Of a stretch of 33,000 bases of DNA, positions 1 to 24,000 are shown piece after piece. Within the stretch, counting starts at the first letter, position 1. Each line of letters begins with the position of its first letter. Both the position numbers and the translations under genes were made by a program. This stretch comes from Botryllus schlosseri (taxonomy: Eukaryota): NCBI GenBank assembly GCA_051294905.1, contig CM119379.1, forward strand, positions 20,181,001-20,214,000, written 5' to 3'. A model generated the notes under the pieces. That model ran no database searches and was not told the DNA's origin. It worked only from the letters and a program-made list of their open reading frames with translations.

Positions 1-3000
1 TTCTGTTGGAGAAAAGTATTATTTGCCATTTATGGAAAACGGAAATAGCATGCAGATCACCTAGTCCATAGCATTGTTTTTGATTCAAAACATCGCCACT
101 GTCTGCACTTGCAGCAATTCTGTCATATTCCGAGGAAATTTGCCTGCAGATTAAAATATCAGATTATGCTTCATACAAAAGAACACATAGTTACATAATA
201 TTAAAATCATAGTCAAATTGACAAATCGAACCTGATATTCATAGCGTCTTGTTCAGCATTTTGACTGGAATTGAGCTTTTCAGGGAACAAGGATCCTTGA
301 GGCAAGCACTTGGAATTATTCCACATGGATTCCAGGCATTCTGTCGGGTGTGGACCGTAGTACGCCTCACAACCACCAGGATACACTACAATAAACAGAT
401 GTATTTAACTGTTGTAAAAACATAAATGGATTTCTTGCCTATTCCAAAGCATTCCTCTTGCTCGGTGGCATTGCCATTATCAGCCATGTCGAACGTCGTC
501 TCATACAAGGCAATAATATCTCTGAAAATAGCAACATATGGAACGATGTACAAACTACATTCCTACTACTATACTGTAGCACTCACCTAAGGTTCATAGA
601 GTCTAAATTTGTGTGTTCAATCATAGTAAGATTGTAGGGATATTTGTAGCCTGCGCGTAAACACTTTGCACCAAGCCACATTGTCACGAGACATTCGGTG
701 GAGTGTGGACCATAATAGTTGGTGCAATTAGCAGGATACACTGTCATAAATAAAATACGTTAACTGAAATTTTTTTCAAAATGTCAATGTATCTTACCAA
801 GACCGTAACATTGCTTTTGACTGGAAATATCCCCATTGTCTGCGTCTGATGCAGTTCGATTATAAAGAGATGATATTTTTCTACAAATACAAAAAAGATT
901 CATATCTGCAATTTATGGCAATTATGGCAATACAAAATTACATATCAATATCAAACCATCATATATTTCACATCATGGCATCACAGTGCCATTAATTATT
1001 CATTTTATTGAAGTCAAGAATAATTACTGAATGCGGCCAAATTACGGCTTCGATATTTGAATATTAGCATTGATGGATTCCGAATTCAGTAAAAAAGTTC
1101 AAAAAAATTATTATCGGTATCTGTGAATATACAAAACTTCACTAATTGATATCTGACCTGACATTCATTGCATCAAGTTCAGCATTCTGACTTATATTCA
1201 ATTTCTCCGGGTACAGATCCCCTTCAGGTAGACAGTGGGATTCATTCCACATTGACTCGAGACAATTTGTGGATTTAGGACCATAGTATGAGTCGCAACC
1301 GTCCGGATAAACTGGAGACGCAAGACAAATTTAATATATGAACAGCAACAACCCAAAAGATAAATATAAGACGCACCAAGTCCTAAGCATTCCAACTGTT
1401 TGCTTGTATTTCCATTTTCAGCTAAACGGAACGTCTCATTGAACAGCGAAATTATGCCTCTGAAAACAGGCAAGTGGATGAAAAGATTGATTGGAAAAGG
1501 AGCACCTACCATATACCAACCTCAAGTTCACAGTGTCTAAATACAGCAGCTCACTAGTGGTCAAATTGAGAGGATATTTCGTTCCCTTCGACAAACATTT
1601 GGCAGCAAGCCAAATGGTTGAAAGACAGTCCGTTGAATGCGGACCGTAATACTTCGTGCAGTCAGCAGGATATTCTGTCACAAGCCAAATGTTATATAGC
1701 TATAAAAAAGTAACATGCAACATCTCACCGAGTCCGTAGCATTCTTTTTGTTTCGACACATCGCCACCGTCTGCTTCCCCTGCAATCTCATTGAATAACG
1801 ATGAAACTTGACTAAAAACACAAAAAATGGATTGGCTTAACAACTGAAATAACACCAAAACTGGACAGATTCAGAAAGGATTCTGATTTGAAGGCTTAGG
1901 CGTACCTTTACATGCATAATTTGGGAGCCTATGATTTGTTGTTGAAAATATTATCAATTTCAAGTGAGAGCACTTTTAAATGGATCAATTAGTTCACAGA
2001 AACAGCTCCACAAGGAACTTCGAGTGTTAAATTACAGTGAAGTGCATTCCAAATCGTATGATATCAGATGGATCAAATAGTCAATAGGGTGAATTGTACA
2101 CGACTGATGAAATCCTACTAAAATTCCGTTTTTATTTCTTATCCATTGCACAATGTTTAAATATTTAACTCTTTATCAGCCGGTTACTACCACAAAAATC
2201 AAATTTTTCAGCCAGTTTTGTAATGAAAAATGATTGTTAACCGCTAATCATATAAACTTCTGCGAGACAGTTCCATAAAACTGATGCTAACGGGCTGAAT
2301 CTGGCCCCCGAACAAACATAGGTCATAATAAGTGAAATCTCACGATATGTCCGTTATGTCCAATTCAGCACGCTGACTTGCACTCAACTTATCCGGATGC
2401 AAGTCTCCTCGAGGCAAGCATTTTGAGCTATTCCAAATGGTTTCAAGACAATCACTTGATATAGGGCCATAGAAGGATGCACACCCCGATGGGTAATCTA
2501 GAAAGAGATAATTTTTAGCGTGAAGTGTACCATATCACATCTATTCCATACTTATTCCAAAGCATTGCCCTTGCATTGTAGAATTGCCTCCGTCAGCCAA
2601 ACGGAATGTCTCATTATAAAACAACTCCACGTCCCTGTTCAGGGTAAGCATAGCACAGATTCAAAATAGCAAACCTTACTCACAATCGCAAATACCTCAA
2701 GTTCATCACATCCAAATCCAGACGGTCACTTGTAGTAAGGTTGTAAGGATAGTTATATCCTGTTTGGATACACCTTGCAGCAAGCCATAATGTGACCAGA
2801 CAATCGGTCGAATGCGGACCATGATATCGCGTGCAATTAGCAGGATAAACTATGCAAAAATTATAAATTCAGAATCATTAAATTCAATATAAGTAGAGGC
2901 TTACCAATTCCATAGCATTCTTTCTGGCTTGAGACGTCGCCACTGTCTGCCTCTGTTGATAGTTCTTCATAAATTGAAGTGACTTCTCTGAATATAACAT

Positions 3001-6000
3001 AACAGATAGTATAATTACTCTGTTAACCGAATGGCATCGGCTGCAATTTTCGAAAAATTTGACTTCAATTTTCAAAATCGAATAACTGTACCTTAATGGG
3101 ATTGGAGCACGGTAAACAAGGTAGCGTTCGATTCAGAATTTCAACGCGGATCCGATTGCGCCACTCAAATCATTTCGAGCTCTGTATCTGGCCACTTATA
3201 TCAAGAGCAAGCCGAGAAAACGTTGGTTGGGAACAGGCATGCTAAATTGCGTACTTTATGAACCTTAGTATAGGTATTCGACGACGATACAGTCTGGTGT
3301 ATTGTATAGGCTTAGAATTCATCGTTCTAGAGAGCCCTGAGTCGACGGTCTACGTCTAGCAGGCGCTAATTTCTAATCAAAACAATGCCGACCGTTTTAG
3401 TCAGCTCGCGGCAGACCGCTGAGAGAGTGAGTCATGGCTCGTGACGCGCGCGCGTATGGTAAGTTCTAAGGCTTATAACTCAAACTGTTGTGACCCTATA
3501 TTAGTTATTTTAGTGTTCGTAGACGGATATTTACAGTCCTTACCATAATGATTTACTGCAAATGCTTATCATTACTACAACGTAAGATATATATCGATGT
3601 ACGACAGCTCTTTGTATACCCAGACGCACGCTTTTGCGTAGGTATAATCGCTGAGTAATATTGTATGTATTCCGAATTATACTGTACCATTAGCCGTTAT
3701 TTAGAATCATATAGGCTACAACAATTCACAGACACAATCTATGAATGTTTATGGCTATCAGAACACGATATATTTCACGGTATGTGACGGGTATTCAGCC
3801 ATGTGCTTGAAGCTGGTACGGTAGTCTGGCGGAATTCGCTTCCCGGTTTTCAAATGAAACCTTGAGCGGTATAGAACTAACTAGTATAGTAGCTTTAGCA
3901 AAATATAAACAGAAACTGACAATCGCTATTCATAGCAACAAACTACAGCTGGTTATGACGAATAAAACCAACCAAACGACAGTGTATACGGCGGGTATGA
4001 GGAACGCGCGTGTCTGCGAAATGATGCGTCGGCGGATATTTTTGTCACGCGGCCTATCACATAGCTTTTGATCAGCTTAGGTGTAACTAATATCAGATAT
4101 GAAGATACGTGTGGACTTGTATGGACACTAGCTATTCACATAATGAAACAACTATGCCCGAAGACGGCTAGAACGAAACATACAGAACGTTATATGAGAG
4201 TGGTCAATGACGCGCAAATTGCCGACACAGTGTATTTTGCAACATATTTATCTACGGCGTTTGATATACGATTTTGACGTCTTCGATATAATAAATATCA
4301 AATTACAAGGTATCAATGAACTTGTACGATCAATATCTATTCACAGAAATGAACAGCAACGACCTAGCACGATTAATATGTAATATATCGTGGTTTCAAT
4401 TACGGTACTCTTCTCTCGTACCGGCATGTCGAAAAATAGACACGCCGGTGCGAAACGGTTAAATAAGGTGTGAAGTCTATCCAGATCTTAATTTTATCTA
4501 TATCGTCTGCTATCGGCTCAACGAAGTACAAATTGATATATTCCATTATTCTCAGGCCATCAGTGTGCATTTCTTCAGGGATTTGATGAATCCTTTATCT
4601 ATCTACTGATGATGAGGAAAATGATGTTATGCAACTGCTTGTATTCCAATTCATATTAAGCTATGGTGGCAGGTTAGCAGGCACATAACCGGAGGGATTA
4701 CTCAAATTACGGTGCCTCCTTTTGCAAATGTGAACAATAAAATAAGAGCTCACACTCTGCTATTAACGTATTAAATGGGCTCACGATAGTGAGAAACCTA
4801 CTATTTTTGGATATTGACATTTGATCGAGTGTTGTCATGCTAACCAGCGCCGTTGATTTCTCAAGGCGTCATGGAATCACCAAAGTTGTAACACTGTTTC
4901 ATTATGCAGCAGTTCATTTTATATATATAATGCCATGTAACATTTCATCAGATATGTTAGGATTCAGATCTAATGGTGTACGGCAAATCTTGTTCGAATA
5001 GATATAGAATGGTTTTAAACTGTATTGATATCGCGGCACCCTCAGAAAGGGAAAAATAGTTTGCCGCACCCTAGCACTACCAGCACCCTGAGTGTAACAT
5101 TTGGGAAGCTGATGACAACAACCTTATATGCTGATGGCGGTGTGAAGGTTATCACTTTCAACCTCATTGCCGGTAACAACCTTTTTTCTAGTCGTAGGCT
5201 TCCCCAATGCTACTCATAATTTGGATGTCTTTCATGCTTTATTATATGTTGCTGACAAATCTCTTCACTTCATTTTTCGTGGCACCCCTGATCAGACTAA
5301 ACGGCATCACAGAGTGCCACTGGCCCCCTGATGCAGCCTATACCGAAAGGAGGTTGTCGTACCTCGTGCATAATTTAGTACCCAAGCTGGTTCATTGCAA
5401 TTTCCAAGTATTGATATATCAGATTCGGTCAGTTACAGCTTCGGGTAGCAATCTCAGTGCCATGAACCAACACAAAGACATAATTTGACAGGACCATCTT
5501 CTATTCATAGAGGTATACAAATTAGCTTGATTGGTGTTTGTGTTCTATCAAAGTTCTAGATGTTGTGTAAGGCCAGCTTTGAATACTTGGAGATACATCC
5601 AAAAAGTACCAATCGACGACATTTAGTAACAAGGAACCAATAAATTTATCCTCCGGAAGAATACAACCACCGGTTGTAGTTTCAGTAGAAGATATTACTC
5701 AAGACAAGGATACAGTACCATAAGCACTCCCACCTGATGTCCTTGACTTCAAGATCAGCACGTTGACTGGGTGTTAGCTTGTCCGGATACAGAAATCCTT
5801 GGTGGACACATTTTGAATTGTTCCAAATCGACTCAAGACAATCTGTCGTATGCGGGCCGTGGTACGTCCGACAATTTTCAGGATACACTAAAAAGAGTGA
5901 ACGATTTGCAAAATGACGACCGCTAAAACAAAGTGACCAACCTACCAAGACCGAAGCATTCTTCCTGTTTGGCATTGTCGCCATCGTTAGCCAAGCGAAA

Positions 6001-9000
6001 GATCTTATTGTGCAATAAAATTATTTCTCTGCAAAAAAACAGTGTGTGAATATAATAGAAAATATAATACAAAAATGACATACCTTATGTTCATGGCTGC
6101 CTGATTTGCACGCTCAGTTACGGTGAGATTGTAGGGATACTTATATCCTTTCTTCAAGCACTCTGACCCAAGCCATATCGAGGACAGGCATTTTGTTGAG
6201 TGTGGACCATAATATTGCGTACAATTTCCCGGGTACACTGGCAATAATTTCAGTTTGAATATTTTGAGAAATACAAATTATCATTCAGTTTGCAAGTTAT
6301 AATGTGGATCAGCAAACTATGCTGAGTTTGATAGATAAACATTGAAGAAAAGCAGTGCATCAGCTATACCACTGCGTATGTGCAGTTACTCCGCATCTTA
6401 CCAAGTCCGTAACATTTTTTCTGGCTTGACTTAATCCCTTCGTCAGCTTCCTTGGCAGTTTTATTATACATGGTGGAAATCGTTCTGAAAGTGCACATGT
6501 GCTTTTATAGCAGATAAACCTATTCAGTACCATAAATTAACGACAATGTTCATAAAATCTGCATGTAAATGATAAATTACAGGTTGAAAACATATTACGG
6601 TAAATAATATTATTTATATTCTAAGATTTTGCAACCAACAATGTTGCAAAAAGCACCAAAGAATACTCTATTACCAGGAGGAATGATGAACACATATACA
6701 AAAAAAGTCACTTTCTTCAGTCAGTGACACCTAATGTCTTCATCCAAATTGATGGGAAAATGGAGGTAACATTTCAGGTTAGGATGAACTGGACTTTTCC
6801 AGCAGAAAAATGAGATTTTTTTTTTAATAAAGTTCTTTTCATATTTTAAAACCAGAGTCTAAGTGCATACCTATCATCTACAACAGATTACCAATTTCTG
6901 AAAATATGTTGCACCTTTATAGGGTGGATTAATTATATCCTTAAAAAAGCACAAACATGTTCATGGGTTCAGTTTTTCTCCCAACCCCTAATGGAAATCG
7001 GAACTGATACATAGAATATCCCATGTAAAATTCAAATTTATAGCCGGGTTTTCAATTTCTAATAGAACATGGAATGTAGTGAATAGAACAACAAAAAGAA
7101 TAATATTAAATATAATGTAACATATATATGATATTCATACTTGATGTTCATGGCATCAAGTTCGTCCTTCTGAGTTGAATTCAGATTTTTGACATGCAGA
7201 TCCCCTTGAGGCGAACACTTGGATTCGTTCAACATTGATTCAAGACAGCCGGTAGTGTGTGGACCGTAGAAGTGATCACAGCCATACGAAAATACTAGAA
7301 AGGCGAATGAAGACCAACTACGATGAAAGCAAATTCAGTAAGAACTCTCACTTATTCCAAAACATTCCCGTTGCTTGGTTACATTTCCCTTGTTAGCGAG
7401 ATTATATGTTTCATTAAATCGCGCCATAACATCCCTATGAGGAAGCGCATTAGAAAGGAAGAATCATACGTAGACAGTAAGAATAACAAACCTGAAGTTT
7501 AGAGTATCTAACACTGCATGTTCACTCGTAGTTATATCATAAGGATATTTTGATCCTTCCCGTGTGCAACTCACACTTAGCCACATTGATGAGAGGCACT
7601 CGGTTGAATGAGGGCCGTAGTATTCCGTGCAATTAGTAGGGAATTCTAAAAGAGAATAGTGAAATAAATAATTGAACAATTTAAGCCCAAAAGGAACAAT
7701 ATCACTACACAATACTAACCCATTCCAAAGCACTTCAATTGATCTCTCACTCTACCTTTACTAGCAGCAATTGCTGAGTTATTGAAGAGAGTTGCGAGCG
7801 GTCTATAAAAAAAGCGGTTGGCGATTTTCACAAGTGCAAGTTGACATAAATTCCAGTGTGAATAAGTCCATCAGCTAATCCTTGACAGTAGATCATAAAA
7901 TCCCAGGAAATATTTGAAAGCAGAGACATATCATACCTCAAGCCCATTCCTGTAAAGGAACTGACGTCACTGGACGATAGCTTGGAGGGGAATGCATATC
8001 CTTCTGAAAGACATCTGACATTCTCCCATACAACACTGAGACAAGCCACCGAGTATGGTCCGTAATACGTAGCGCAACCGCTAGGGTATTCTGAGAAAAA
8101 GCCCAAATTACACCCAAAATCATTTTGTTCACTTAGCTCTAATATTACCCATTCCGAAACAACGAAGTAGGCTTGTTACGTTGCCTGCGTCAGCAGACGA
8201 TTTCGTTCCATTGAAGTCGCGAATAATATCCCTTATAAGAAACTGCATTTAGATATCCAATGCGCACAACGACATGTATATTAGATTAGGGCTTTTCAAA
8301 CTTTTTTCTCTAAGACCCCATTGTGAAAGAAAAACGTATACGGGAATCGAAGATGGAAAATTTAACCTGTGTACTGTAACTGCCATTTGTTCGACAGAAG
8401 TCCTTTGAATGCAATATCAAGTGACAAGTTTGTGAACAACCAATGCATTCCGTGAAACGAATAACAACATAAAATTATAAAACGATAAAGACCGTCTAAT
8501 GTGACAGTGTATGAAACAGAATTTGTGAGGTCATATTTGCTTTTACAACGCCAATGGCATAGCAGATAACAACAGCAAAACTATCGTACGAAATGGAATA
8601 TCAACTTCAGCAATGAAATTACTCACACTTAATTCTACCCATGACAATAATTAATATTTATATAACGGTGTCTGTTACTGTGGGCATTTCATGTTAATTT
8701 TAGGGGTGCAATAATTTATGTGCCATACTTGTATTCGCTAGATGGCGTATGCTTGACGACACTTCCTGGTCTGGTCTAACGGAATATTCTGGATATAGCT
8801 GTGATAGGGTTCGGTTTGTCAATAATAATTGGCCCACCGGACGTTCCCCCACTGTATCTACCGATCTTGTTGGGAGAATATCTTATTCGTGCTACTACTG
8901 TGACGTATTATAATTTGGATATGAGGAAATTCGATAAATTGGAACTTCAAGTAATATACTGTTTCTACCATACTTAAAGATCGCGTATATTTACATCGGA

Positions 9001-12000
9001 AACCTTATAGGACTTTGCGGCGCTGTAAGTTGAAGGGAAGACAGCTTACACAGAATCACATGGGCAGTTCAGCGACAGCAACAGTGTCACGACTCACAGT
9101 TTGTGAAGCCCTGTATTTGATTACCTCAAGTTCATAGAGTCATAGCGCAAGAGCTCCCCGCTTCCTAATTTAGATGGATAAGCTTCTCCCTCGGGTAGAC
9201 AGTGACTATATTCCCATAAAGTCTGAAGACAATCCAAATCATGCGGACCATAGTACTTTGAGCAGCCAGTTGGATATTCTGTGCGAAGGCATTAGTAGGT
9301 TAATAAAGATACAATTGAGGTTCATAAACACCAGGCCAAAGTATTAAATTTGAGAGAAATACGGAGACGCAAAATTGCCACAATGGACATTGTACATGTA
9401 CAAGTACACGGATACCAGCAGTTTTTTGGTACTTGTTACTTATTATTCATGTGTGATATATACATGTAGGAATGATCATAGTAATATCCAGGCGGAGCCA
9501 TTAATCAGCAAATTACTTTTGTTTCAAACAATTATTGAGATTATGAAATCTAAGCGTAAGGCAGTAGAATTGGACCAATGACAACAAAGTTTATCAAATA
9601 GCAACCTATACCAAGCATTCTATATTCAGATGTGCAAATTGATTAAGATTACACCAACATTGTTTCCATACATGACTATGCAATAATCTTACCCATTCCG
9701 AAGCAATAAGTTTGATTGACAAGATTGCCGCTTTCAGCCGAATCAAAGGTGGCGATAAAGAAAAATGATAGTTCTCTGCAAAATTATGACAGATACTTAA
9801 TGTCATAATGATACACGATACCATTGATGGATTACCTTATGTTCATCGAATCAAGCTCGCTTAACCTTGTACTAGTCAATTTTGTTGGATACTTGTACCC
9901 ATGAGGTGAACAACGCGCTGTAGTCCACAGCGTGACCAAACATTCAACAGAGTGAGGGCCATGGTAAGTGGTACAATCGTCCGGATAAACTGAAATAAAT
10001 GAAAAGCAGTATTGTTGCTGTGCAGACTCAATGAAAAAGGAGTCATCGAAGGCTACCAAAACCAAAGCAGTCTCGTTGACTTTTCGCATCCCCCCCGTCG
10101 GACAAAATTCTGGTCAAATTTGTCTCAGTCATGTATTGCCTGGTTAGGAATGACCTCAATATAAATATCAACGACAAAATTGTTCTTAATACGATGATGT
10201 CACCTTAAATTAAGAGCGTCGATGCGAGTATGTTCAGCTGCAGACAATTTGGCAGGATACCGTGTCCCGCTGTCAAGACAACCAACGCCAAGCCAAATTG
10301 TGTTTAGGCACAAAGTTGAGTGAGGTCCTAAAAACTTTTTGCACTCATCCGGAGGAACTAAACGAAGAACGAAGAAAAAATAACAACATTGTCATACAAT
10401 CGCATCTCGAATGTTACCAATACAGACCCATTCCATAGCATTTCATCTCTTGTGCCTGGTTCTCGTTATTGGCGGAGATGGCCGTGTCATTAAAAGATGA
10501 TATCACATTTCTAGAAATCAAATAGATATTCGCAAGTTACGACTGAGATCAAGCATTAGGAATAGTTGAAGATGTCATGTAGCCTTCAGCGATGTAAAGC
10601 CTTGATTGATAAAAAGTGGAAGCCAGTTAGCATGTGGTGGATAATCGCGATGTTAAGGAGTATCTTCAATGAGTAAAAATGATCAATTTATTAAAATATT
10701 ATACCATCGCCATAGTATATCATCCACTGCTCCTCCAACCACAATTACAGTGGTTCTTAACCTGTAATAACCTGGTGAACTCTTATGCAAATCTGCAAGC
10801 CTTCGGGGAGCCCTAAATATTTGAGTCACAAATACAAAAATACACATCTACTACACATCTATTACATTACTATAGATTACTTGCGCAAAGAATCAACTGT
10901 GCATCAGAGTGTTAGAAGGAAAAAACATTAAAATACGATTTTCACACAAAACGAAAACAGTATAAGGAATATATTCTGCAAATCAGTGCATAGCAGCACA
11001 GACTGCGTGTTTATGGTGAAACGGTCTATAGTGTTTTGATAGTATCGATCGAGTTAATGGAGCAAAAGTGGTCCCTCATGGCTTGTTTGAAAGAAGAGAT
11101 CTCTGTCGCCGTGAATAGCACGTACTTATTCGTACTAGGTATGTGTTGTGGACTCCTTAAGGAAGTAACCAAAACTTGTATTTGTTTACAACAAGGTAAT
11201 CTCGTCTTATTGATTATATATACGCTCGGTTTCATTGCTCTCGTCTAGCTTCGTGGCCTAGTTTGTTAGGCGTTCAAATTCCTAATCAAACGGTACATCA
11301 CTTATTCGTTTCGCATTGGTCGTATTTTTCTGTTTTAAAAAGTGAAGTAAAATTTTCCAGAAAAAGCAGCCGGTGCCAAATCGGTTGAGAGACACTGAGC
11401 CAATAGAAACACACATACCACCTCTACTTTCAATACGTTTTTTAACATTTTAAAAGATCAGTAAGTATCAAAGTGAATGTTTGCACTTGAGAGCTACGGT
11501 TACCATATTTTGCGATTTAATGGTAAGCCGAAAAATGATGTCAGCATGTCTGGTATTGGCACGGACCACCAAACTATTTTCCGAATAATGCAAGCTTCGA
11601 TAATATTTCACACCTTAAACCGAGTCCAGTGTAAGAACCGATGACTGTAGATGAGAGTTTATCAGGCGAACCCGTTCCTTCTGGAAAGCATTTCACAGAA
11701 GACCATATCGAGGTTAGGCAGGCGACTGAGTATGGTCCGTAATATGTTTCGCAACCCGCAGGATACTCTGTCAAATTGAAGATATTAGAAATTTTGATGT
11801 TGAGGTTTTGGCGATCTTCGGATGAGTCTCACCCAGACCAAAGCAACGAAGCTGATCAGTTTGATTCCCAGAATCTGCAGACGATTTTGTCCCGTTGTAT
11901 TCGTTCATGATCTCTCTACAAAGTGAACACTTGTGGCATGTGAATTCGATACATGTCATCAACACCATACCTCAGGTTTTGCGAATTATGCCTTGAAAGC

Positions 12001-15000
12001 TCGCTAATTGATAGCTTTGTTGGGTGAGCGATGCCTTGAGGTAAGCAGAGAGAATCGTCCCACATAGTCACAAGACACGGCATGCGATGCGGCCCGTAAT
12101 ATTGCGTACAGTGTTTGGGAAAAACTAAAATCGAAATGCACTGGCCTCGTTGGTATGAAAATTGCTACATGATATTACCCAAGCCGTAACAATGCTTCCG
12201 TCCTTCAACATCACCGCCATTTGCCAAATCGGCAGTTATTTGTAAGTAATCCTTTAGTTCTCTGAAATGTTAGCATTACAATTAGTTCAAAGCCGGAAAT
12301 AAGTAAACAATTAGACTGGGCTGGTATAAATCCAAGGTTGTAATCACTCGAGTCATGAATCAACTCGAGTCGCGATTTTTTGGTGACTTGACTTGCCTCA
12401 AGGCATTTTGCATGACTCGAATAAAGTCATATGACTCGAGACTGGGACAGCCAAGACAGACATTTCATTGTAACGTCGAAGAATAGTTAAGTTACCACAT
12501 TATTAATATTATGTCTATTGGCAGTACTGAATACTGATACTTGGAAAATAGGACCAGAAACTGTTAAGACTGAGGAAAATTGCAATATTATGAAAGCGAG
12601 CCATTCTATATCACTCGAACAGAATTAAAAACGTGGGTTCAGCCGGATTGAACTGAAAACTGAAGAGTGAACAAAATGACTTGGGTTAGGACTCAAGTCA
12701 AAAGACTAGGACTCAGACTCGATCTTCGACTAAATGACTTGGACTCGGACTTGACTCGGTGGTGAATTGAAAATGATTCGACTTGACACAAGTTGAAACT
12801 ATAAAAGTGAGATTGACTTTCGACTCCAAACATTGTGACTTGGTTTTAACCCTAATATAATCTATATTGAGATGGCTCAACTAAAATTGACATAACTGGC
12901 AACATAAACTCATGTGATGGGTAACAGTGACTATATGCCGGACTTGACATAACTATGATTGGAGTAAAGATTCTTCTGATAAGATATAACTATTTTCATC
13001 ATATATTCCTATCACAAATAGTGAACCTAACTAATTTGACACTGAACTCTACGAAATCCCTATACCGATCAAGACTGCTGGTACTGAGTGATAACGACAC
13101 CTACTTGAGATTCCATCGATTTAATAGCGACAATGCTGCAGGCGTCTGCTTCGGTGGATACTTGGTCCCTTGCGAAACACATTTTACACTTTTCCATATA
13201 GACACCAGGCAGTCAATCGGGTGCGGGCCCGTGAAAAACGTACAGTTCTCCGGAAATACTACAAAGAAAAATCAGAAACGTGAACACATGACGAAATAAT
13301 GCATAACACGTAACAATAACTTAGCCTAATAATGTCAAGTTATTCACTAAAAGCTTTCTGACTCATCAGTAGAGACCGTCAGTAATATGGCAAATCAAAT
13401 TCAAACTACAGGAAATGTCGAACTGTATGACGCTATTATAGTGAAAACAAATACTTAGTATACATTGTGGTACGGCAACGACATAACACAAGAAATGTTA
13501 CTGATGAGGGTCAGAGGTGAAGGTTTTATGGAATAAATTAACAATATGAAGTTGCCCTGAATGGCCTAAATAATGTGTTGATCCACACTCACCATAACCC
13601 GTACAAGCAAGCGCACTCTCTCTATCCCCACTTAGCGATAATTCCGTGGTTTCGTTGATTACTTGCCTAAAAAGGAATAAGCCATACTATTGAATACGAA
13701 CTATAAAGCATAATGAATGACTCACCTGAGAGTTAGTCCATTAACACGAGCCCGCTCGGCAGGCGAATGCTTAGGAGGGTAGGAAGTTCCTTCCTTTGAG
13801 CACATATATTCCCAAATAAATATCAAACATTCTTCAGAATGTGGACCATAGAAGTTACTACAATTGTACGGGTATCCTAAAGGTATACAACATGTCATTA
13901 ATACTAAATTTGCTAAATGATCATTTGAATTTGAATCATTTGTCAACTGTTCATTGCCACAATGAAATTATACTACTATATACAATAGACCAGGGGTTCT
14001 CAACCCGCGGCCCGCAGACGTTTATTTTGCGGCCCGCGACATCTTTCATTATAAACGCAATTGCCACTGGCACGATGTTACATATTAATTTAGCTACTTA
14101 GCTCTCTTAGCGCACCGTCTATGTCTCGTTTAATTACTCATTCTATGTGTTCTGGTTTCTTGATATATGCTCGATTGTAGATTGTTATTGTTTTGAATCG
14201 GTATTCGGCTGGACTCTAGTTCAAGAGAATTCCGTAATGTAGTACACTCTTAAAGGGTGTTTACCTCAGATACAAAAACAAGGAACGGCGGGAACTGGGT
14301 TTGTAACTCTGTTTGGAGCAATCAATTTGCTTTCTCAGATATAAATGGAAAACCGATGTGACATATTTGTCGAATAACAGTTTTCCTAACGACGCGTAGA
14401 AGATTAAAATTATACCACGACACTTTCTTTTGAAGTTATACATATCGCCTGATGTTAGAAAAAACATTGCTAGCTAGGTGTCATGCCCCCCAATCTATAT
14501 TTCGAGGCATTGTTAAAATTGTCGACCATGTTACAGACACATGGTTTAAAATTGCGTGGAATATCGCTAAACCCATGAAATTGGTCAGAGAAGGTGTGAT
14601 TTCAATAAAACGAGTATTCGCTGCTTCTGATACTAACAGCAAGGACAACATCACCTGACAAATTTCGAAGTTACAGTTGTCTGATTCAACCGTGACCAGA
14701 AGAGTAACAGCAATTTCAGTCGATCTTTCATCGTATGTTTTGAAATACGTTGACGCGTAGACTACTTTAGCCTAGCATCGGACGAATCCTCTGACTCCAC
14801 AGACATTACAGAGCTAATTAATTACCTGGTTTATTTTTATCTGAGTGGAAATGCTGGCAGGGCAAACGCGGGTAGGGACCAGCGAAAGACATCAACTTAA
14901 CAAAGATGAATTCTATCTGTATTGGTGCAGGGCTCCATCCATGAAAAGAAAAGGAGTAGGGTTGATTGGTTTGTTCAGAAATACCCGGATTCCAAACTTC

Positions 15001-18000
15001 TTCTCATATCACTGAGAGCTCAAAGCTCTGTAGCGAAAAAGTTACCGTGATTTTATACTTGCTCGCTCACGCATTCAAACAGAGACTTCGGTTCTCTGGC
15101 GGAAGGGTTTGAAGGTGCAGCATATACCGACTGGGCCACTAATGCAATGCACGCTCAATGACGGGATATGCTTGCGCCGCTGGAAGATAATATTCTCACA
15201 AATAAACTGCAATCTTGTGAACTCTGTCTATTAATTCTTTAGAATCAATAAAAATATACATAACGCCCGAATATGACTGGTAAATAGGCTATAGTAGCCT
15301 AAATTTAATAATAGCCCACTAATAAATGGAAATAATGTTCTGCGGCCCGCAGCGTCTTTCGCTGTTAAAATGCGGCCCGTTATACGAGGGAAGTTGAGAA
15401 CCCCTGCAATAGACGAAATGAAGGAAGGAAGAACGTAGTTTATTTTTTGTCCTTGATGTTTTTGCGGCATATACACCGACTCATGATACGCATACACACG
15501 ATCTGCGCATATCCATACCATGAGTGCATGATGTGCATATGCCGCTGGACAAGGAAGTGCAGATATAGCCTTTACGGCTTTTTAAGTCATGCACCACCCC
15601 TCCATGCTATCCCAGTAATGCATGAGCGCGAAGTAGGGAAGCCATGGATACCAGTGTTACTAATCAGGTCTTTGGTCTGACCCGGCCGGGAATTGAACCT
15701 ACGACCTACCGATCAAGAAGCCGGACGCTTAACCATTACGATATCTTGTCGGTCGGTCGGTCAATAATATTTCACATTTATGCAACCCACCGATACTTAC
15801 TTAAGCCATAGCACTTGATCCTATCAGAGACACTGCCCGCATCAGCAGAATCTTTTATGTCCTTGAAACTCGAGGCCACACGTCTGAAAACAAAGATGTA
15901 GCAGAGAATACGGTGTAACATTCTAATTGTACTAAATTTGAACGTAGAAATCCTATCATATTTATGCTGCACTAATCCAGCAACGAAAGTTCAAGGTATG
16001 AAGGTAAATTATCATCATTCCTGTGGGTACTGAGTACAATTGTACATGCGTCACTCACTCTCCTTTTCACAGCTTTCTATCTCTGGCGATAAGCGTCAGA
16101 GTCTGCAACAGATATCTCAGCCATAGAGCAACAAACCTCAATCCCATTCCGGTAAAGGCCTCAAGTTCTGCAGCAGTTAACCTAGGAGGGTGTTCTGAGC
16201 CTTCGCTCACGCATTCTGCATCGTACCATAGTGTGTTGAGACATTCGACTGAGTAAGGCCCATAGTAAGTCGTGCATCCCACAGGATATTCTGCCCAATA
16301 ACATAATTCAATATACAATAAAGTGTTACATGGCATTGATCATACGCATCCCGAAGCAGCGCTCTTGATCAGGAATATTTCCTCGGTCAGCCGATGCTTT
16401 CAATGCATTAAATTCAGCTATCACGTTCCTTAAGTATATTGGTTAAGGTTATATATATATAATGCTAAACATTGGAATTGATTGCACCTGAGATTCATCC
16501 CGTCAAGCCTGTTGCGATCGGCTGTTGATCTCAAGCTGGGGTGGAAAGTCCCTTCAGGCGTACAAAGTGCTTCATAAAACATAGTCTCCAAACACCCCAC
16601 TGTATGCGGACCTCGGTAAGTAAGGCATTTTGACGGAAACACTGTAACAGAAGATGTGAAAAATTGATTTGCGTTCCATTGACATTGGAAGTTTACACAC
16701 TCATTCCATAACAATAAGTCTGACTCGCCAGATCACCGTCCTCGGCGTGAGCGTTTATTGACCGAAAATGGTCTTTTAGTTTTCTGAAAAACAGATTTCG
16801 TCAAGAAAACGTTGCATACCAACAAGCAGGTTCCAACCTGATATCCCAAGTGTCATACTCCCTTAAACGTTCTGTAGACAGTCTTGTGGGATGATGGTCG
16901 CCTTTCGTCAGACAAGATGCGGAGTACCAAATTGTCACCAAACAATCAATAGGGTGAGGGCCGTAATACTTTGTGCAGTACCCCGGCAGAGCTAAACCAA
17001 AGTGATAGCATGGACCAGCAAAGAAGCAAACAGATTGACCCGAACATCACAGGCTTTTACTCCAAACCGAGGTTTACTACAAGCAATATATCTTTAAATG
17101 AGATGACAGTATCATGCACATATAATTCACTGATTCAGCAGAATAAATAGATATGCAAATTGAATTTAATCTTCACAGGATTATCAAGTCCTCCATTATG
17201 AAGATTTAATTGTTCATATCAATCAAGAGTATTTATTATTCAGGCAGTTTGAGCCTAAAAAATTTATATCGGGAATGCATGATCCACGACTGCAAGCTGC
17301 AAAATGTAGGTAAATGTTGCCTACTAAAATCTCTTTCAGACAGCTGCAGAAAGTATGTGAAAATATTGGAACACACGCTTGACAATACTCATGAAATAAA
17401 TTTAGAGAATTTTATGGGATAACGCAAACCCATTCAAACATGACAATCACAACTGATCAATTATAAATGAAGAATTCAAATTTCCGTGTAAATTAAATGT
17501 GCATAGATTATATGTATATCATTCTCCTTCTCACTTATCAGTAGGGCGAAGAAGATTTTGACCTAGCAAATCAAAATTTTGACTTTTTTTACCCAAAAAA
17601 ACTTTAATTTTGACCAAATTTTGACCTCATGTATGTAAATTAGTTTTTTTCGCACAAAATGTTAAAATTGTACTACTTATCTTCATTTCTGATTGGAACT
17701 GTCTGTCATTACAAAGTAGTTTGGCCTGAAAAAACATTTTGGACTTCAAAACTGACAAATTTTTGCATGAAAAACTAGTATTTGTACGAAATCTGGCCCT
17801 ATGAAAAATTCCAGTAGTTACATCACATATCATGGTGGAAATAATTAAAATTTGTTGTAGTAGACCGAAATATACTACATTCTCGGGTAGAAAGTGTCTG
17901 TCTTTATTAAGTAGCTTGCCAAGAATGGAGAAAGAACGTTCAACAGCAGCAGTGGTTGGCTGACAACACTGAAGTTGTGCGTACACTGCTGGTGACACAC

Positions 18001-21000
18001 CGTGTTGCTTCATTCTGACAATGTTGTCGACATCACAATTTTTCATCACGCTCTTCTTGATATAAGAACCATGCAATGCCCAAGCGGTCTTGCATCAGTT
18101 AGGATATTGTGGTACGTTGACCATAACACCATGTCAATTTGTTTCATTTGACCGTTTATGATTCAAAATGGGCCGTCTACAACGGTAGGTCTATAAAGTA
18201 GGCTACAAGCTGTAAAATATCAAATGATAAGTTCACCGAAAGTGCAAAATCTACGATAAAAACAAAATGCGGAGGTCAAAGAAATTTTGACTTTGTAAAC
18301 AATTTTGACAAATTTTGACCTAGCGCTACAATTTTGACAAAATTTTGACTTATTTTGACATGTCAAAAAAAAATCGCCTTAGTTATCAGTAATTTGAATT
18401 AATTTTGTTTACTATTTAAGTGAACAAGTCTTATTACCAAGACCGAAGCAATCCATTTGCCTTCCAGCATTTCCACTGTCAGCATCTTCCTTAAAGGTTT
18501 TGAACTCCGCCAACACTTGTCTGCAAAATCATCAAGAACTATTAACCAAACCGATAGACGAGATACATATGGATTCAAGAAACGGCAACTGACTTCACGC
18601 TACGAGCCATGTAACGATTAAAATCCGTTGTGCTCAACTTGGATGGATGCAGTTGACCTTCATCCAAACACAAGGCATCAGACCAAATTGAATTCATGCA
18701 ATCCATGGAATGGGGTCCAAAACGAACTTTGCAACCTTTCGGAAGCACTACAACAGACTATGCTTGAAGAAAATATTTTAAAAACTCAATCAGTAAAACA
18801 TACCTTCTCCGTAACAACACAGTTGTCCCTTTGGTTCTCCGTCCAGAGCGTCATATAATAATGATGTGACGTATTCACTCGCTTGACTAAAAACGAAACC
18901 AAAATTGACAGAAAATTTAAGGTTGAGATACGGTAACGAACTAAAATAAATATAGTTCAACGAAATTTCCTCATTTCTAGTAACCAATGGTGTTTCAGTT
19001 TTTATGTTTTCCGACCCGGCAAGATAAGTGAATATCAGAAGCGACGAGTAACAGAGTATCAACTACGTAAACTCAATACGAAAGTACTCCTGGCTTTCCT
19101 TTTTCTATTTGTCATAAACACTGAGAGATATAGCAGAGCCAAATGAAAGAAATTTTGAAAATACATACCGGTATCATCGATTGCACAGGCTAAACTACAA
19201 TACTCACAACAAATTAGTCCACATGAGTTCACAATATTTTTCAGGATAATTTGCCTTTAGGTGATTAAGACCTTCAACCGCGCAAGCACCGTCCCTCCAC
19301 ACTGCCTCCAAACATCCTGCTGAGTGAACGCCATGGAATGTGTCGCAACTGCTTGGAAAGCCTTGCAAAAATAATCATAAAATTTACATATATTGGCCGT
19401 TAAAGAAACAACCGCGGCAGATTACCATAGCCCCAGCATGCTTGACGACCCCTACCACCAGCATATGCCGCATTAGCAAAATTGCGAAAAGTGTCGATAA
19501 TTTGCCTGTGTGAAAAATAGATTGTGAAATATCTGTGATGTTAAGATCTCAAGATCACGATTACAAAATTATCAGATTCCACGCTGTTTAACTGTATGGA
19601 AATTTTGAGTCGTGTGAGCGTTTTGGCATAAACACAACTCATCAGCCCTACTTCCAACACAGGCTCATACTCTGACGCATCGTAATGCAAGAATTGAAGA
19701 GGATACATATAAGGAATGTATGCTAAGAATGTAAATGAATCTAACTCTTTCATAAAGCTCAAATATTCAGTGAATCAGAACAACTCACTGGTGAGTAAGC
19801 CACTTCAAATATGTGCCGGAACTGGTATGATATATCTTTTGAGGAGCTGCTGCACCGACGAGTTCACACCCGCTATTAACCCACGCTATATGCAAGCAAT
19901 TCAATCGACGAGGTGTACTACCAGAGCATTCTGGTGGCAGAGCTGTTAAGAAATCAATTGGCTGGGATTATCAACTGAACAACACCTGGAAATGGCTGAA
20001 ATATTCATAATATGAAATGTAGTATGGTCAAAGCAGCCACAACACCAAGTCAATCGATACTATTTTGTTGCAGTTGTGACAAGTAATGGAAATAGGGTCA
20101 CTCGAAATATCATTGCAGACCCAATTCATATAATACTATCTAGTTGATATAATCGAACAAGCAGGCATTTCTGGCTTTGAAACTGAAACCTACAATCAAA
20201 GTCACAAAGGTAGTGCAAAAAGTGCCAATAAATGTGCTCGGTAAAGCACTCTGACACTGACCATCTATTCAGCAGGTGTTATACGGAATTCATATATCCA
20301 AAAACATACATAGGCATTCTGGAAATGGGGCGCTCCATCCAACATTCCCAAAACAATCGGTTACTTTACAAGTCGCAGTGTCTCTCCGGTATTTAAGTAT
20401 TGTATCGGAGGGGCAAGTAATAGTGCATACGGAGTTGAGGTTATTTGCTGATGTACACGTCAGACTAGCGCCCGGGAGCAGTGGAGCTAGGTGATCGTCT
20501 GAACATTTTAATCCTGCCCAAAAGAAACATCGATTCAAAATCAACCGAGTTTTAACTGACTTGGATACTTGCCTGGATCTACCACGCAAGTCGGAATCCC
20601 AGGGAACCACTCTCCCTTCCGACCCCCACTAATGTCGATACAATCAATTGTGCCAGCCCCATCAATAGACAGTTTATATCCAGTAGCACAGGAAAATTCA
20701 CACCGCGGCTTCCCAGTGTCGTTAGAGATTCCACAATGAAATGAGGTTTGAGGCGAGAGTGTCTCTACAGGAATCCTTGGACACTCAATATCAGCTAAGA
20801 ATGAGAACGGTGAAATAAAAATAGGATTACAGGTGGTCAAAATAGTCATTGTTGGTACTCAAGTAGTAAAAGCAGAAGAAATGTTCCAAGTTTCTACTCA
20901 AGTACGAGTAGAAGTGTCAATTTCCAAGTTAGTAAAATGTAAGTATTTTCTAGGGCTACTTTTGCCTAAAACTGGTTATGTAGCAGTAGAAAGTAGTACA

Positions 21001-24000
21001 AAATTATTACACTCAAGTAAGTAATACATGTAGGAAAAACCTAATTGGGAGCTCCGAAAAGCAGGACTTAGTTACAGACCACCTCTGGATAAGATGTAGA
21101 TATATATATAGAGAGAGAATTTGCACAAGTTGATAGAAACATAGCGATTCCGCAGAAATATATTCCCTTGCTCTGTCATGGATTGAATACTCACCAATTT
21201 CGCAAATGAAAGGTAGTTTACGATCGCATTTAAAATCATTCCACATCCCATCAGAATTAACAATGCCACCACAATCTTCAATGCCTAGCATGTCGTTTGG
21301 TTCCTGCTCTGCACTGCCACTCGATCGCCATCTCTCAAATGGTTTGTCGGCAACTATAAACGCATAACCAATAAGCATTCGATAAATTGTCTAAACATGA
21401 AATAAACGAATGATGTCAGTCAGGTCGAGAGATTATCACTGTGTTAAACTTCTTCGTCAACAGCTTCCAAATCAGGACACTCGGGATAATTTTTAAGCAT
21501 TACTCCTGGTCTGGGCTATATAGTGTATAACTTTCAAGAGTTTACCATTCCGACAAAAAAGGTTGACAAGCACTTGTCTAATGTACCGGTACATGGAATG
21601 ATGAAGGACACATTCCAGGAGACTCTGAACTAGAAACGTACTTTCGCAAATTAGCGGTAGTTTTAGGTCGCAGAGGCTGTCGGTCCACTTTCCCTCCTTA
21701 TTCAAAGTAACACACCGTTCTCCATTGTCATACCCGTTAGGCTCTGTGTCGGCTCGTTCCCAATTTTCATAATCTATTGTAAAATACAGCTTGAGGGCCC
21801 TCGACACAAAGTTTATAGAAAATGCTCATACTGGCATGACCCAATCTCTTTACAGATGACTCGCCATTGGCAGAATACCACGACGAATACATGTAAAGCC
21901 TCATTAAATCGCCTCGGACGAAATCCGCTTTACTGATCGCTTGAACATCCATGTAGAATTTGTCGTGATGATACGGTTTATTCAAGTAATAATTGTTTTT
22001 TTCATAATCGTCGATCATCTCCTATTTAGAGAGGTAGAATATGTATGATGGGATAAAATTCGAAAATTGATGCCGTAAACCATTAGATACCAGAAATTTT
22101 TATCAAATCACAACACATACCATTATGTTCAGAGGTCGAAAATAAAATAACCACTTTTGGTCATTTGAAGATCTGGGCAAATCAATAATTTGGCTTCAAG
22201 CAGGGTTGTAACCAAGTTAAAAGGCTACGAGTCTCAAGTCAATCTCACTTTTATAGTTTTGACTCGAGTCAATTCGTGTCATTTTCAATTCACTACAGAG
22301 TCCAAATCAGTGAGCAGCGGGTCGAGTCCAGTTCATGGTAATATGACTCGAGTCTGAGTCCAAGTCATCGTGTTCACTGCTCAGTTTCCAGTTAAAGTCT
22401 TGTTAAACCCACCTTTTATAACTCTGTTTGGAGGTATCCAATAGTTCGCATTTATAATATACTAATTGTCCTCCCCTTTTAGCAGTTTCTGGTCGCATTT
22501 TCAAGTACCAGTACCAATAGACGAAATCCCAATAGTGTGGTTACTTTACTATTCGGAATTACAATGAAATGTCGGTCTTGGCCGTCTGAGTCTCGATTCA
22601 TATGACTTGGTTCTAGTCATGCGCAACGACTCGAGTCCAAGTCGAGTCAGTACACAGATTGACTCAAGTCGAGTTAAGTCATTTTCTCAAATATCAAGTC
22701 AGGTGGAATCATCAGAAAATCGTGACTCGAGTCGAGTCATGACAACCCTGTCTTCAGGTTGAATCGAGTATCACTCACTGTGACGTCATAACAGTACGAT
22801 GATGTAGAAAGTGCAAATGTGTACCTTGTATATGATCATAAACAAAATAATGCTAGTTTTAGTTCTAGTTCGGTACTTTTTCAAAAACACCCATTTGATT
22901 GCACTTTGTGGCAATGTGTCTTCTACTAGGCAACTCGAATCATTGTGTCCAGCCCTAGTGACTGGTCATTAATATAGTAGGTTTCTCTGATTGTATGGTT
23001 ACTATTAGAAGCAATTTTATGAGTGAAATCCTCACAACCACAAATGTATTGATACACTGCATAACCATCACTACTTGTATTGTGTACCCTCAAGTCCTTT
23101 TAAAAGTTACTCAGGCCTATCCAGATATACTTCCAACATGTAATTTTCTTCTTCTACTTGAAGTCCTTATTTTGATCGAATAGATGTAATTTAATTTGCG
23201 AAGAATAGGATCCGGCCCTGAAAGAAGCACATACCTTAGTCTTGTTTGTTAATAGATCATTGATTTCCTTGGATTCAACACGCGGCAGTGTACCAGACAT
23301 CGCATTACAATGAGCCTTACATTCCAGGTATGTGCAGAATTCCGTGTAGGCCCATAGAAGATAGTTCTTCCGTTGATAAGTTATGTTGTAGGAGTACATT
23401 CTGAGTTTACCCCCAATTGTAAAATCTAGGTGAGGATAATTATAGACGTCTACCGAGCTGGAAGAAAATAAAATTCTCAATTTTCAACACTAACTGATGG
23501 AAAATGGTTTGTTAACTAATGTTGAATCCACGAATTCCCAACGACCCTCAGTTCCACTGTCATTCATTCCAATCCAAGTACCTGATACAAGACGTACAAA
23601 GAGGAGAGATATGCAATGTCATTGGTATGTAGCTTCTATACCTTGCGCAGAATTGAGATCAGACATAACTGTTGACATTTTGCTGACAAGCCATTCATGA
23701 ATCGCTGAGGATTTAGGCATTGCCAATGTCCCATAAATGACTGTAAGATGAAATATATGAAATATTTGGAGCTGGACTAAAAGTTACTATGGTGTTACCC
23801 CGTCATAGCCTCAAGCATACTCATATTCCCACGGTTGTAACCAAGTCACAAGGCTATGAGTCACAAGTCAATCTGACTTTTATGGTTTTGACTCGAGTCA
23901 AGTTAAGTCACTTTTAATTCACCACCGAGTCAAGTCGGAGTCCAAGTCAGCAATCAGAGGGTCGAGTCCAAGTCATGGTATTATGACTATGAGTCCGAGT

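Follow-up and report, generated by a model that had tools for sequence, protein, structure and literature searches.

A probable giant lectin-type gene of Botryllus schlosseri carrying about 48 tandem copies of an apparently undescribed four-cysteine domain with relatives in giant viruses

What kind of protein would be made from dozens of copies of a small cysteine-containing domain that matches no named family? This question is raised by a stretch of 33,000 nucleotides (nt) of the ascidian Botryllus schlosseri (assembly GCA_051294905.1, contig CM119379.1, positions 20,181,001 to 20,214,000), hereafter called the window, which corresponds to G000:C9:20181001-20214000 in a genome of 495.5 Mb; a further 60 kb beyond window position 1 were also examined. 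An earlier note on this DNA, made from its letters alone, had described a repeat of 79 amino acids (aa) with four cysteines, each copy encoded by a 154-nt and an 83-nt exon. Exon scans and profile models agree with that description and place the repeat on the minus strand. Taking gene structure and proposed role together, we consider it rather probable that a giant ascidian gene of the lectin type, read from the minus strand, has its 5' half in the window, and that its ~48 central copies of the domain would form an extracellular stalk.

The orientation of the array follows from two motif expressions, which matched the minus strand 18 and 11 times and the plus strand not once. A scan for splice-bordered exons, requiring 154 nt between AG and GT and open in frame 2 (A exons) or 83 nt between AG and GT and open in frame 1 (B exons), retrieved an alternation of both kinds, and hidden Markov models (HMMs) built from the repeat exons scored single exons at E-values between 1e-10 and 1e-28 (A) or between 1e-10 and 1e-15 (B). 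The exon lengths reported before were reproduced: 23 of the 24 A exons within the window measure 154 nt and one 151 nt (13726-13876), whilst 22 B exons with canonical borders have 83 nt and a further one, at 13587-13666, has 80 nt. The degenerate unit that opens the array (A 19789-19942) shows a B-like peptide but no clean in-phase splice sites for a B exon. The earlier count of at least 24 copies is right for the window, which holds 24 A exons and at least 23 B exons, but the array as a whole has ~48 units, and its proposed limits at positions 61-19942 do not stand because it continues for 11.7 kb beyond the window start. Exon borders are AG/GT or AG/GC nearly throughout the array (~90 exons). 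The intron phases 1-2-1 claimed for every unit follow from the lengths of the A and B exons, and they were verified by splicing 66 consecutive exons (units 6-38), which gave a stop-free frame of 2,606 codons. As each exon pair starts and ends in phase 1, the 154-nt + 83-nt set could duplicate without breaking the frame. Moreover, the stretch carrying the array is present in independent DNA runs of four studies, which rules out an assembly artefact.

How old are these copies? The cysteines C5, C16, C26 and C75, in the pattern C-x10-C-x9-C-x48-C, are present in 41 of 41 clean units of ~79 aa. In the A-exon alignment G10, G30 and the first three cysteines are invariant and P2, P11, L17, W21 and P34 reach 90% conservation or more, the most recognisable motifs of the unit being YP-x2-C, YYGPH-x3-CL-x3-W-x4-C-x3-G-x3-P, AD-x-G[DN] and C[FY]G. 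The proportion of differences between units averages 0.81 at synonymous sites (pS), which are saturated, versus 0.38 at non-synonymous sites (pN), and the median ratio of non-synonymous to synonymous rates (dN/dS) is 0.30 for the 13 unsaturated unit pairs. Likewise, no similarity was detected among the 75 introns compared (blastn, E<1e-5), as had been noticed by eye. Divergence of this kind, in exons and introns alike, fits the old duplications under purifying selection that had been suggested for the repeat. N-glycosylation sequons occur at 2.4 per unit, with recurrent positions 4, 22, 36/38, 58 and 68.

Reading of the adjacent DNA, which the earlier note had recommended, showed that the array reaches about position -11,700 (G000:C9:20169329) with 24 further A-type exons, and that its units are degenerate at both ends. 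The array is flanked on the same strand by sushi and C-type lectin exons upstream and by more C-type lectin exons downstream. Directly 5' of the repeats, and probably in the same gene, lie sushi/CCP-type exons (20293..20858, minus strand) with a weak Pfam Sushi match (E 0.008), to which the sushi region of Styela clava XP_039272239 aligns (tblastn, E 3e-12); at higher coordinates on the minus strand, Pfam recognises Lectin_C (E 6e-5 and 2e-6) in two exons coding for C-type lectin domains, 21016-21390 and 21496-21825, and Sushi (E 2e-5 and 2e-7) in the exons 25332-25589 and 26117-26392. Over at least 20 kb, the exons downstream of the array run collinear with the last 4,284 residues of Styela clava XP_077971250, and on the strength of this collinearity we read the Botryllus gene as encoding an orthologue-like giant mosaic protein. 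The Styela protein has 7,864 aa, with 46 units first and then a C-terminal region with C-type lectin domains (CTLD) and sushi-type modules, and hydrophobic, possibly membrane-spanning segments near residue 7191 and at its C-terminus. Its isoform XP_039270628, from the same gene, contains Lectin_C, CysR_MRC2_N/ricin, many Sushi and F5_F8_type_C domains.

The copies had been treated as variants of a single consensus, and although the repeat itself is real, its units are not equivalent. Among units 12-35, identity is 0.64-0.66 at even lags vs 0.44 at odd lags, so that two types alternate along the array, one reading ...CLE[ST]MWNNSKCLPQG.L.P.KLN.SQ... and the other ...CLVTIWLGAKCL..G.KYP.NLT..EH..... 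The array of Styela XP_077971250 displays the same periodicity (0.657 vs 0.448) and the same alternation of two types, and in a maximum-likelihood tree type-1 units from Botryllus and from Styela fall into a single clade (support 100/99). The terminal units of the Botryllus array also correspond by position with those of its Styela orthologue. From the alternation and the cross-species clade it follows that the duplicated block is a di-unit of 158 aa, a pair of diverged domain types that would have been copied as a whole, and the tree indicates that both types are older than the split of Botryllus and Styela.

The structure predicted for the unit agrees with the small, largely helical four-cysteine module that had been anticipated. 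AlphaFold2, run with modest alignments of ascidian units, modelled one Botryllus unit with a predicted local distance difference test score (pLDDT) of 94.5 and a predicted template modelling score (pTM) of 0.82, and three Styela units with a pLDDT of 96.5 and a pTM of 0.84. Each unit is predicted to have four helices (residues 14-23, 39-46, 50-65 and 69-76), with the AD-x-G turn between helices 3 and 4, and its four invariant cysteines probably form two disulfides. The high pTM of the three-unit model points to a fixed geometry between consecutive units.

Does this module belong to a known family? As the earlier note had suspected, sequence profiles gave no answer. No Pfam family reached threshold on the repeat with single exons, the whole unit, three-unit windows or whole homologues, nor was one found over the repeat region of seven ascidian proteins in which Sushi and Lectin_C were detected elsewhere, and a profile search of PDB sequences with the unit gave nothing below E 0.66. 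Pfam matches with 0 stretches, such as Chromo_2 and TRI12, were rejected as summed-noise artefacts of repeats. Structural searches were equally negative: neither the one-unit nor the three-unit model had a Foldseek match in PDB at E<=0.001, Foldseek against BFVD gave nothing meaningful, and three queries of the ESM Atlas feature search returned no usable match. VIA-align against 48,161 chains reached at best Z 4.2-4.4 with AAA-lid/Lon alpha sub-domains, over ~60 residues of a single unit; the notes of that program warn that a score under 8 (under ~13 in the case of helical bundles and repeats) may reflect no more than a common arrangement. These sub-domains share a small four-helix arrangement with the unit (root mean square deviation, rmsd, 2.7-3.0 A), but they are cytosolic, lack cysteines and are 5-8% identical to it, and the match was treated as generic helical similarity.

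A loose resemblance to Sel1 hairpins had also been pointed out. Sel1/TPR repeats do share helix-turn-helix elements and small residues at the turn with the unit, but they build a continuous solenoid, whereas the Botryllus units are predicted to be discrete four-helix disulfide beads. That identity was rejected, there being no Sel1 match in Pfam at E up to 10 and a Foldseek TM-score of 0.13-0.14 between the three-unit model and the Sel1 repeat protein 6onw (~0.14 for Sel1 and TPR structures); a continuous alpha-alpha solenoid was discarded as well, since no VIA-align match extended over more than one unit (best Z 4.4). EGF, Sushi, TSP1, LDLa, kringle, WSC, ShK, TIL, saposin and mucin CysD were dismissed for want of a profile match or of their cysteine spacing in the repeat. 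The ascidian rusticalin repeat has 33-34 aa and the spacing Cx6Cx6-7Cx8Cx7CC (PMC6339383), unlike the 79-aa four-cysteine unit in both length and spacing, and was likewise rejected. In the literature, rusticalin repeats, Epi-1 and a 2026 survey of horizontal gene transfer in tunicates proved unrelated, and the Styela LOC identifiers appear in no paper that we found. Altogether, with no name, model, structure or paper found, the 79-aa domain appears to be an undescribed family without a recognisable solved fold, whose sequences are already in databases as 'uncharacterized' predictions.

Where else does the domain occur? A profile search of 1.84 billion representative proteins returned 541 matches, and our statements cover the best 150 of them. 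All named multi-unit proteins in that set come from ascidians (Styela clava, Ciona intestinalis, Phallusia mammillata) and are annotated as 'uncharacterized proteins', including Styela XP_077971250/XP_039270628 (LOC120345301), XP_039272237, XP_039272249 and XP_039272239, Ciona intestinalis XP_078487526 and XP_026695343, and Phallusia mammillata CAB3262894. They have the same unit of 78-79 aa, four cysteines and motifs, in 3 to 46 tandem copies, but their units are on average only ~42% and at most 62% identical to those of Botryllus; local tblastn identity between Botryllus and Styela is at most 58-60%, too low for the window to be DNA of Styela clava itself. Some of these proteins consist of units only, for example Ciona XP_078487526 (5 units, 422 aa) and Styela XP_039272237 (25 units).

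On the other hand, the same profile search brought up P0107, a protein in which a hydrophobic N-terminal anchor is combined with two units and PA14, encoded on an AT-rich contig of 5 kb with intronless genes including DUF7197, deoxynucleoside kinase (dNK)/thymidylate kinase and rhodanese. The eight top matches to the unit model among AlphaFold-DB clusters are uncharacterised A0A6C0* entries (TM 0.61-0.78, probability 0.98-1.0), one named with a major capsid protein N-terminal domain and others with Link or TSP1, and the best row by TM-score in the ESM Atlas is a Nucleocytoviricota cluster with PAN domains (TM 0.65, rmsd 2.2 A, 65 residues). A degenerate DNA pattern for the core motif, for which we roughly estimate ~0.2 chance matches in IMG/VR, found 4 contigs there, all four with true relatives, that is, P0107-like proteins with two units; one of them carries Xlink, and ribonucleotide reductase, YqaJ and Ulp1 are among the genes nearby. 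A locus search seeded with the viral unit pair confirmed no locus, and a protein homologue search seeded with P0107 retrieved P0107 itself only.

In metagenomes the same DNA pattern gave 20 true matches among 21 loci: 6 viral-type open reading frames (ORFs), 13 ascidian-like exon structures and L017. In the 13 ascidian-like loci the ORF ends at the end of the A exon and the GC content is 0.39-0.42; contigs of the Joint Genome Institute (JGI) with such exons are L018, L020, L021, L023, L025, L027, L028, L030-L033 and L035. They are probably ascidian host DNA in holobiont metagenomes, in which case the family extends to further ascidian lineages. L017 (Ga0308005_10036389, 1292 bp, minus strand) is eukaryotic, with three tandem units of a single exon each and introns of ~250-300 nt; its units carry the WWN motif of the viral version and group with viral units in the tree (100/98 for the pair). 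Among the viral loci, L029 lies on a contig of 98.8 kb that has a major capsid protein (Capsid_NCLDV + Capsid_N), VLTF3 and an A32-like ATPase within ~9 kb of the domain gene; these genes, together with the dNK and DUF7197 genes near it, identify its source genome as a member of the Nucleocytoviricota. In two independent giant-virus contigs, L010 and L029, the domain gene adjoins DUF7197 and is near a deoxynucleoside kinase gene, which looks like a conserved core-gene neighbourhood.

The viral set comprises P0107 and 13 further viral-type homologues (P0156-P0168), together with the metagenomic loci L011-L014, L016, L022, L026 and L029. An HMM made from Botryllus units only matched both units of all 14 viral-type proteins (1e-12 to 1e-22), and the viral pair aligned in hhalign with ascidian three-unit windows at a probability of 99.0% (E 2.7e-18, 130 columns). 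Over 46 ascidian and viral units, C16, C26, G30 and P34 are invariant, and C5, G10, P11, W21 and C75 are at least 90% conserved. The viral proteins share with the ascidian ones the positions of the cysteines, the GPH-x3-CL-x3-W-x4-C-x3-G-x3-P core, the tandem arrangement and an about equal period, but they have two copies only, no introns, WWN in place of the LD-x-MN[LI]R segment and a few extra residues before the last cysteine. Their N-terminal hydrophobic anchor and PSI-like cysteine-rich region precede the two units and then PA14 or Xlink, in contrast to the CTLD and sushi modules of ascidians; judged from these modules, the viral context too is of an extracellular type. We propose that ascidian and viral members constitute one new family, which sequence would define by its four cysteines (5, 16, 26 and 75) and the GPH-x3-CL-x3-W-x4-C-x3-G-x3-P core. 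In the unit tree the ascidian units lie on one side of a 98/96 branch and the viral units with L017 on the other; neither side is nested in the other, so that the direction of transfer is not readable from the tree.

What would such an array do? Giant extracellular mosaic proteins in which a small disulfide-containing module has been multiplied are a familiar kind. Classical phase-1 symmetric modules such as sushi/CCP, EGF, mucin CysD and SEA are also small disulfide units in long tandem arrays, with phase-symmetric exon sets, N-glycosylation and mosaics with lectin domains; their sequences are unrelated, however, and they are beta-rich, whereas the Botryllus unit is all-helical and split over two exons by an internal phase-2 intron. 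The central region of the Botryllus gene encodes ~48 head-to-tail copies of the unnamed domain; the protein would be secreted or membrane-anchored, the array forming a stiff, heavily N-glycosylated stalk like beads on a string, of ~120-150 nm for 48 units if each bead adds ~2.5-3 nm (our own estimate rather than a measurement). Such a stalk may hold the lectin-type domains at a great distance from the cell or build an extracellular matrix or mucus layer, and the same domain, as a tandem pair, would be used in membrane-anchored surface-type proteins of giant viruses. We regard a giant gene whose array acts as a rigid glycosylated extracellular stalk as the best explanation, with somewhat better than even chances. 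Several points weigh against it: the stalk role is inferred from architecture; neither the 5' end of the gene nor a signal peptide was identified; the Styela models are automatic predictions that begin inside a unit; and four RNA-seq runs under the same species label, each sampled at 6-13% over positions 1-6000 of the window, gave no reads on the exons of positions 1-3000 and no exon junctions.

Missing transcripts had been named beforehand as something that would speak against these exons, but with tissue and depth limiting, sampling this shallow neither supports nor refutes expression of the array. A few RNA reads fall near 5600-6000 in one run. Reads at 95-99% identity, mostly with a partial fit and on both strands, fall in the intron 2988-5733 (mainly 3000-4600), where they are most likely attracted by a transposon or other dispersed repeat that is itself transcribed and does not form part of this gene. 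The empty exons and the degenerate end units would suit a decaying or silent array, a pseudogene or unexpressed duplicate, but the intact frame of 2,606 codons, the canonical sites at nearly all of the ~90 exons and the dN/dS of ~0.3 speak for a living gene, Styela has conserved the same unit types and terminal units, and the RNA sampling was shallow; we judge silence very improbable. Still harder to credit is a divergent member of a named family, whether a Sel1/TPR-like hairpin or a known cysteine-rich extracellular module: the helical unit and its AD-x-G turn hint at it, together with the sole TPR match, a stray TPR_8 on a viral protein (E 0.035, 14.7 bits vs a cut-off of 25.7), whereas no Pfam family reached its threshold, the PDB profile search was empty, Foldseek TM stayed at or below 0.15 for the three-unit model with Sel1 proteins included, and VIA-align matched one unit only.

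More serious consideration is due to the possibility that the units themselves bind glycans or polysaccharides (e.g., tunic cellulose, matrix sugars or microbial surfaces) as a multivalent array. The domain always accompanies carbohydrate- or ligand-binding modules (CTLD, ricin/CysR and F5/8-C in ascidians; PA14, Xlink and PAN in viral proteins), the units-only proteins of Ciona and Styela suggest an activity of the unit's own, and the conservation across ascidians of the surface motifs YYGPH and AD-x-G[DN] favours binding. Against this, the unit has no structural or sequence similarity to known carbohydrate-binding modules, and its heavy N-glycosylation and strict length are features met more often in spacers; we hold the proposal as tentative, well short of even. 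The origin of the family invites a further conjecture, namely that ascidians captured it from a giant virus, or a virus from an animal or protist host, with expansion in ascidians later. The homology between ascidian units and the Nucleocytoviricota pair holds at the sequence level, the viral gene has those for major capsid protein, VLTF3, A32, dNK and DUF7197 as neighbours, and every named multi-unit cellular protein among the matches considered is ascidian. The tree, however, separates ascidian units from viral ones and L017 with no nesting, and this intron-bearing eukaryotic locus of viral type makes a wide, poorly sampled eukaryotic distribution just as likely; such a capture we think unlikely. 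Slightly more doubtful is the boldest combination, in which a new fold and family linked ascidians and giant viruses by horizontal transfer in either direction and was then amplified more than 130-fold in one cluster as multivalent polysaccharide- or surface-binding rods for tunic or mucus biology.

Returning to the extent of the array, its units can be followed along the minus strand from 5' to 3'. The first, degenerate A-type exon (19789..19942; 154 nt, open and flanked by AG/GT) has an independent E-value of 0.0027 with the A-HMM and its B-like peptide near 19440-19532. It is followed by a degenerate unit (18804..19361) with A at 19208-19361 (154 nt; A-HMM 1e-10) and B at 18804-18886 (83 nt; AG/GT, CCYG motif). 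Then come unit 1 (18438..18747; A 18594-18747, B 18438-18520), unit 2 (16701..16991; A 16838-16991, B 16701-16783), unit 3 (16346..16641; A 16488-16641, B 16346-16428) and unit 4 (15801..16290; A 16137-16290, B 15801-15883). A short variant unit of 77 aa keeps the phase (13587..13876; A 13726-13876, 151 nt, and B 13587-13666, 80 nt) and precedes unit 5 (12179..13258; A 13105-13258, B 12179-12261), unit 6 (11833..12124; A 11971-12124, B 11833-11915), unit 7 (10428..11767; A 11614-11767, B 10428-10510), unit 8 (10057..10357; A 10204-10357, B 10057-10139), unit 9 (9693..9989; A 9836-9989, B 9693-9775), unit 10 (8149..9278; A 9125-9278, B 8149-8231) and unit 11 (7720..8090; A 7937-8090, B 7720-7802). 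The next units in the window have an assigned type, 2 and 1 in turn: unit 12 (type 2, 7352..7645; A 7492-7645, B 7352-7434), unit 13 (type 1, 6402..7294; A 7141-7294, B 6402-6484), unit 14 (type 2, 5946..6237; A 6084-6237, B 5946-6028), unit 15 (type 1, 2905..5887; A 5734-5887, B 2905-2987, with 2,746 nt of intron between them), unit 16 (type 2, 2552..2849; A 2696-2849, B 2552-2634), unit 17 (type 1, 1729..2497; A 2344-2497, B 1729-1811), unit 18 (type 2, 1377..1674; A 1521-1674, B 1377-1459), unit 19 (type 1, 798..1311; A 1158-1311, B 798-880), unit 20 (type 2, 439..740; A 587-740, B 439-521 with a GC donor) and unit 21 (type 1, 61..385; A 232-385, B 61-143). The opening two bases of the A exon of unit 22 occupy positions 1..2, and the array runs on past the window start.

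Near the 3' end of the array, one unit has lost its internal phase-2 intron, so that A and B form a single exon of 237 nt (L004:79-315; G000:C9:20171079-20171315, minus strand); this intron-less copy served as the contiguous reference unit for the Botryllus genome. A whole-genome search with the A-exon profile gave 131 scored matches, every one on C9 within a 165-kb cluster (20.035-20.200 Mb). A second, larger array of A-type exons lies ~95 kb downstream (G000:C9:20034752-20086729, minus strand, ~75 scored matches), and this array at 20.035-20.087 Mb is probably part of at least one other giant gene of the family. Two small plus-strand arrays of 3-4 units each are found in the same cluster (G000:C9:20103380-20104491 and 20128791-20129805). 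Similar open-frame peptides (...SQSHFY.FDSSQV.S...HHRV.SESKS...) occur in introns in at least three places and on both strands (window 22169-22760 and 23860-24330; G000:C9:20162701-20163102), which suggests a short dispersed repeat element.

For the family as a whole, these observations mean that an unnamed module without a Pfam model makes up thousands of residues in several giant ascidian proteins, and its definition would improve the annotation of every ascidian genome. Its compact, confidently predicted four-helix disulfide domain is a target for structural biology. The pairs of 154- and 83-nt exons in phases 1-2-1, with their alternation kept, offer a clean example of arrays grown by duplication of exon sets and stable across species. 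Moreover, the family opens the question of a shared ancestry for an extracellular module found in chordates and, next to core viral genes, in Nucleocytoviricota. Cellulose synthase is a known horizontal transfer into tunicates, and if the transfer-and-amplification scenario were true, the family would be a second case in which viruses or microbes have contributed to the extracellular biology peculiar to tunicates.

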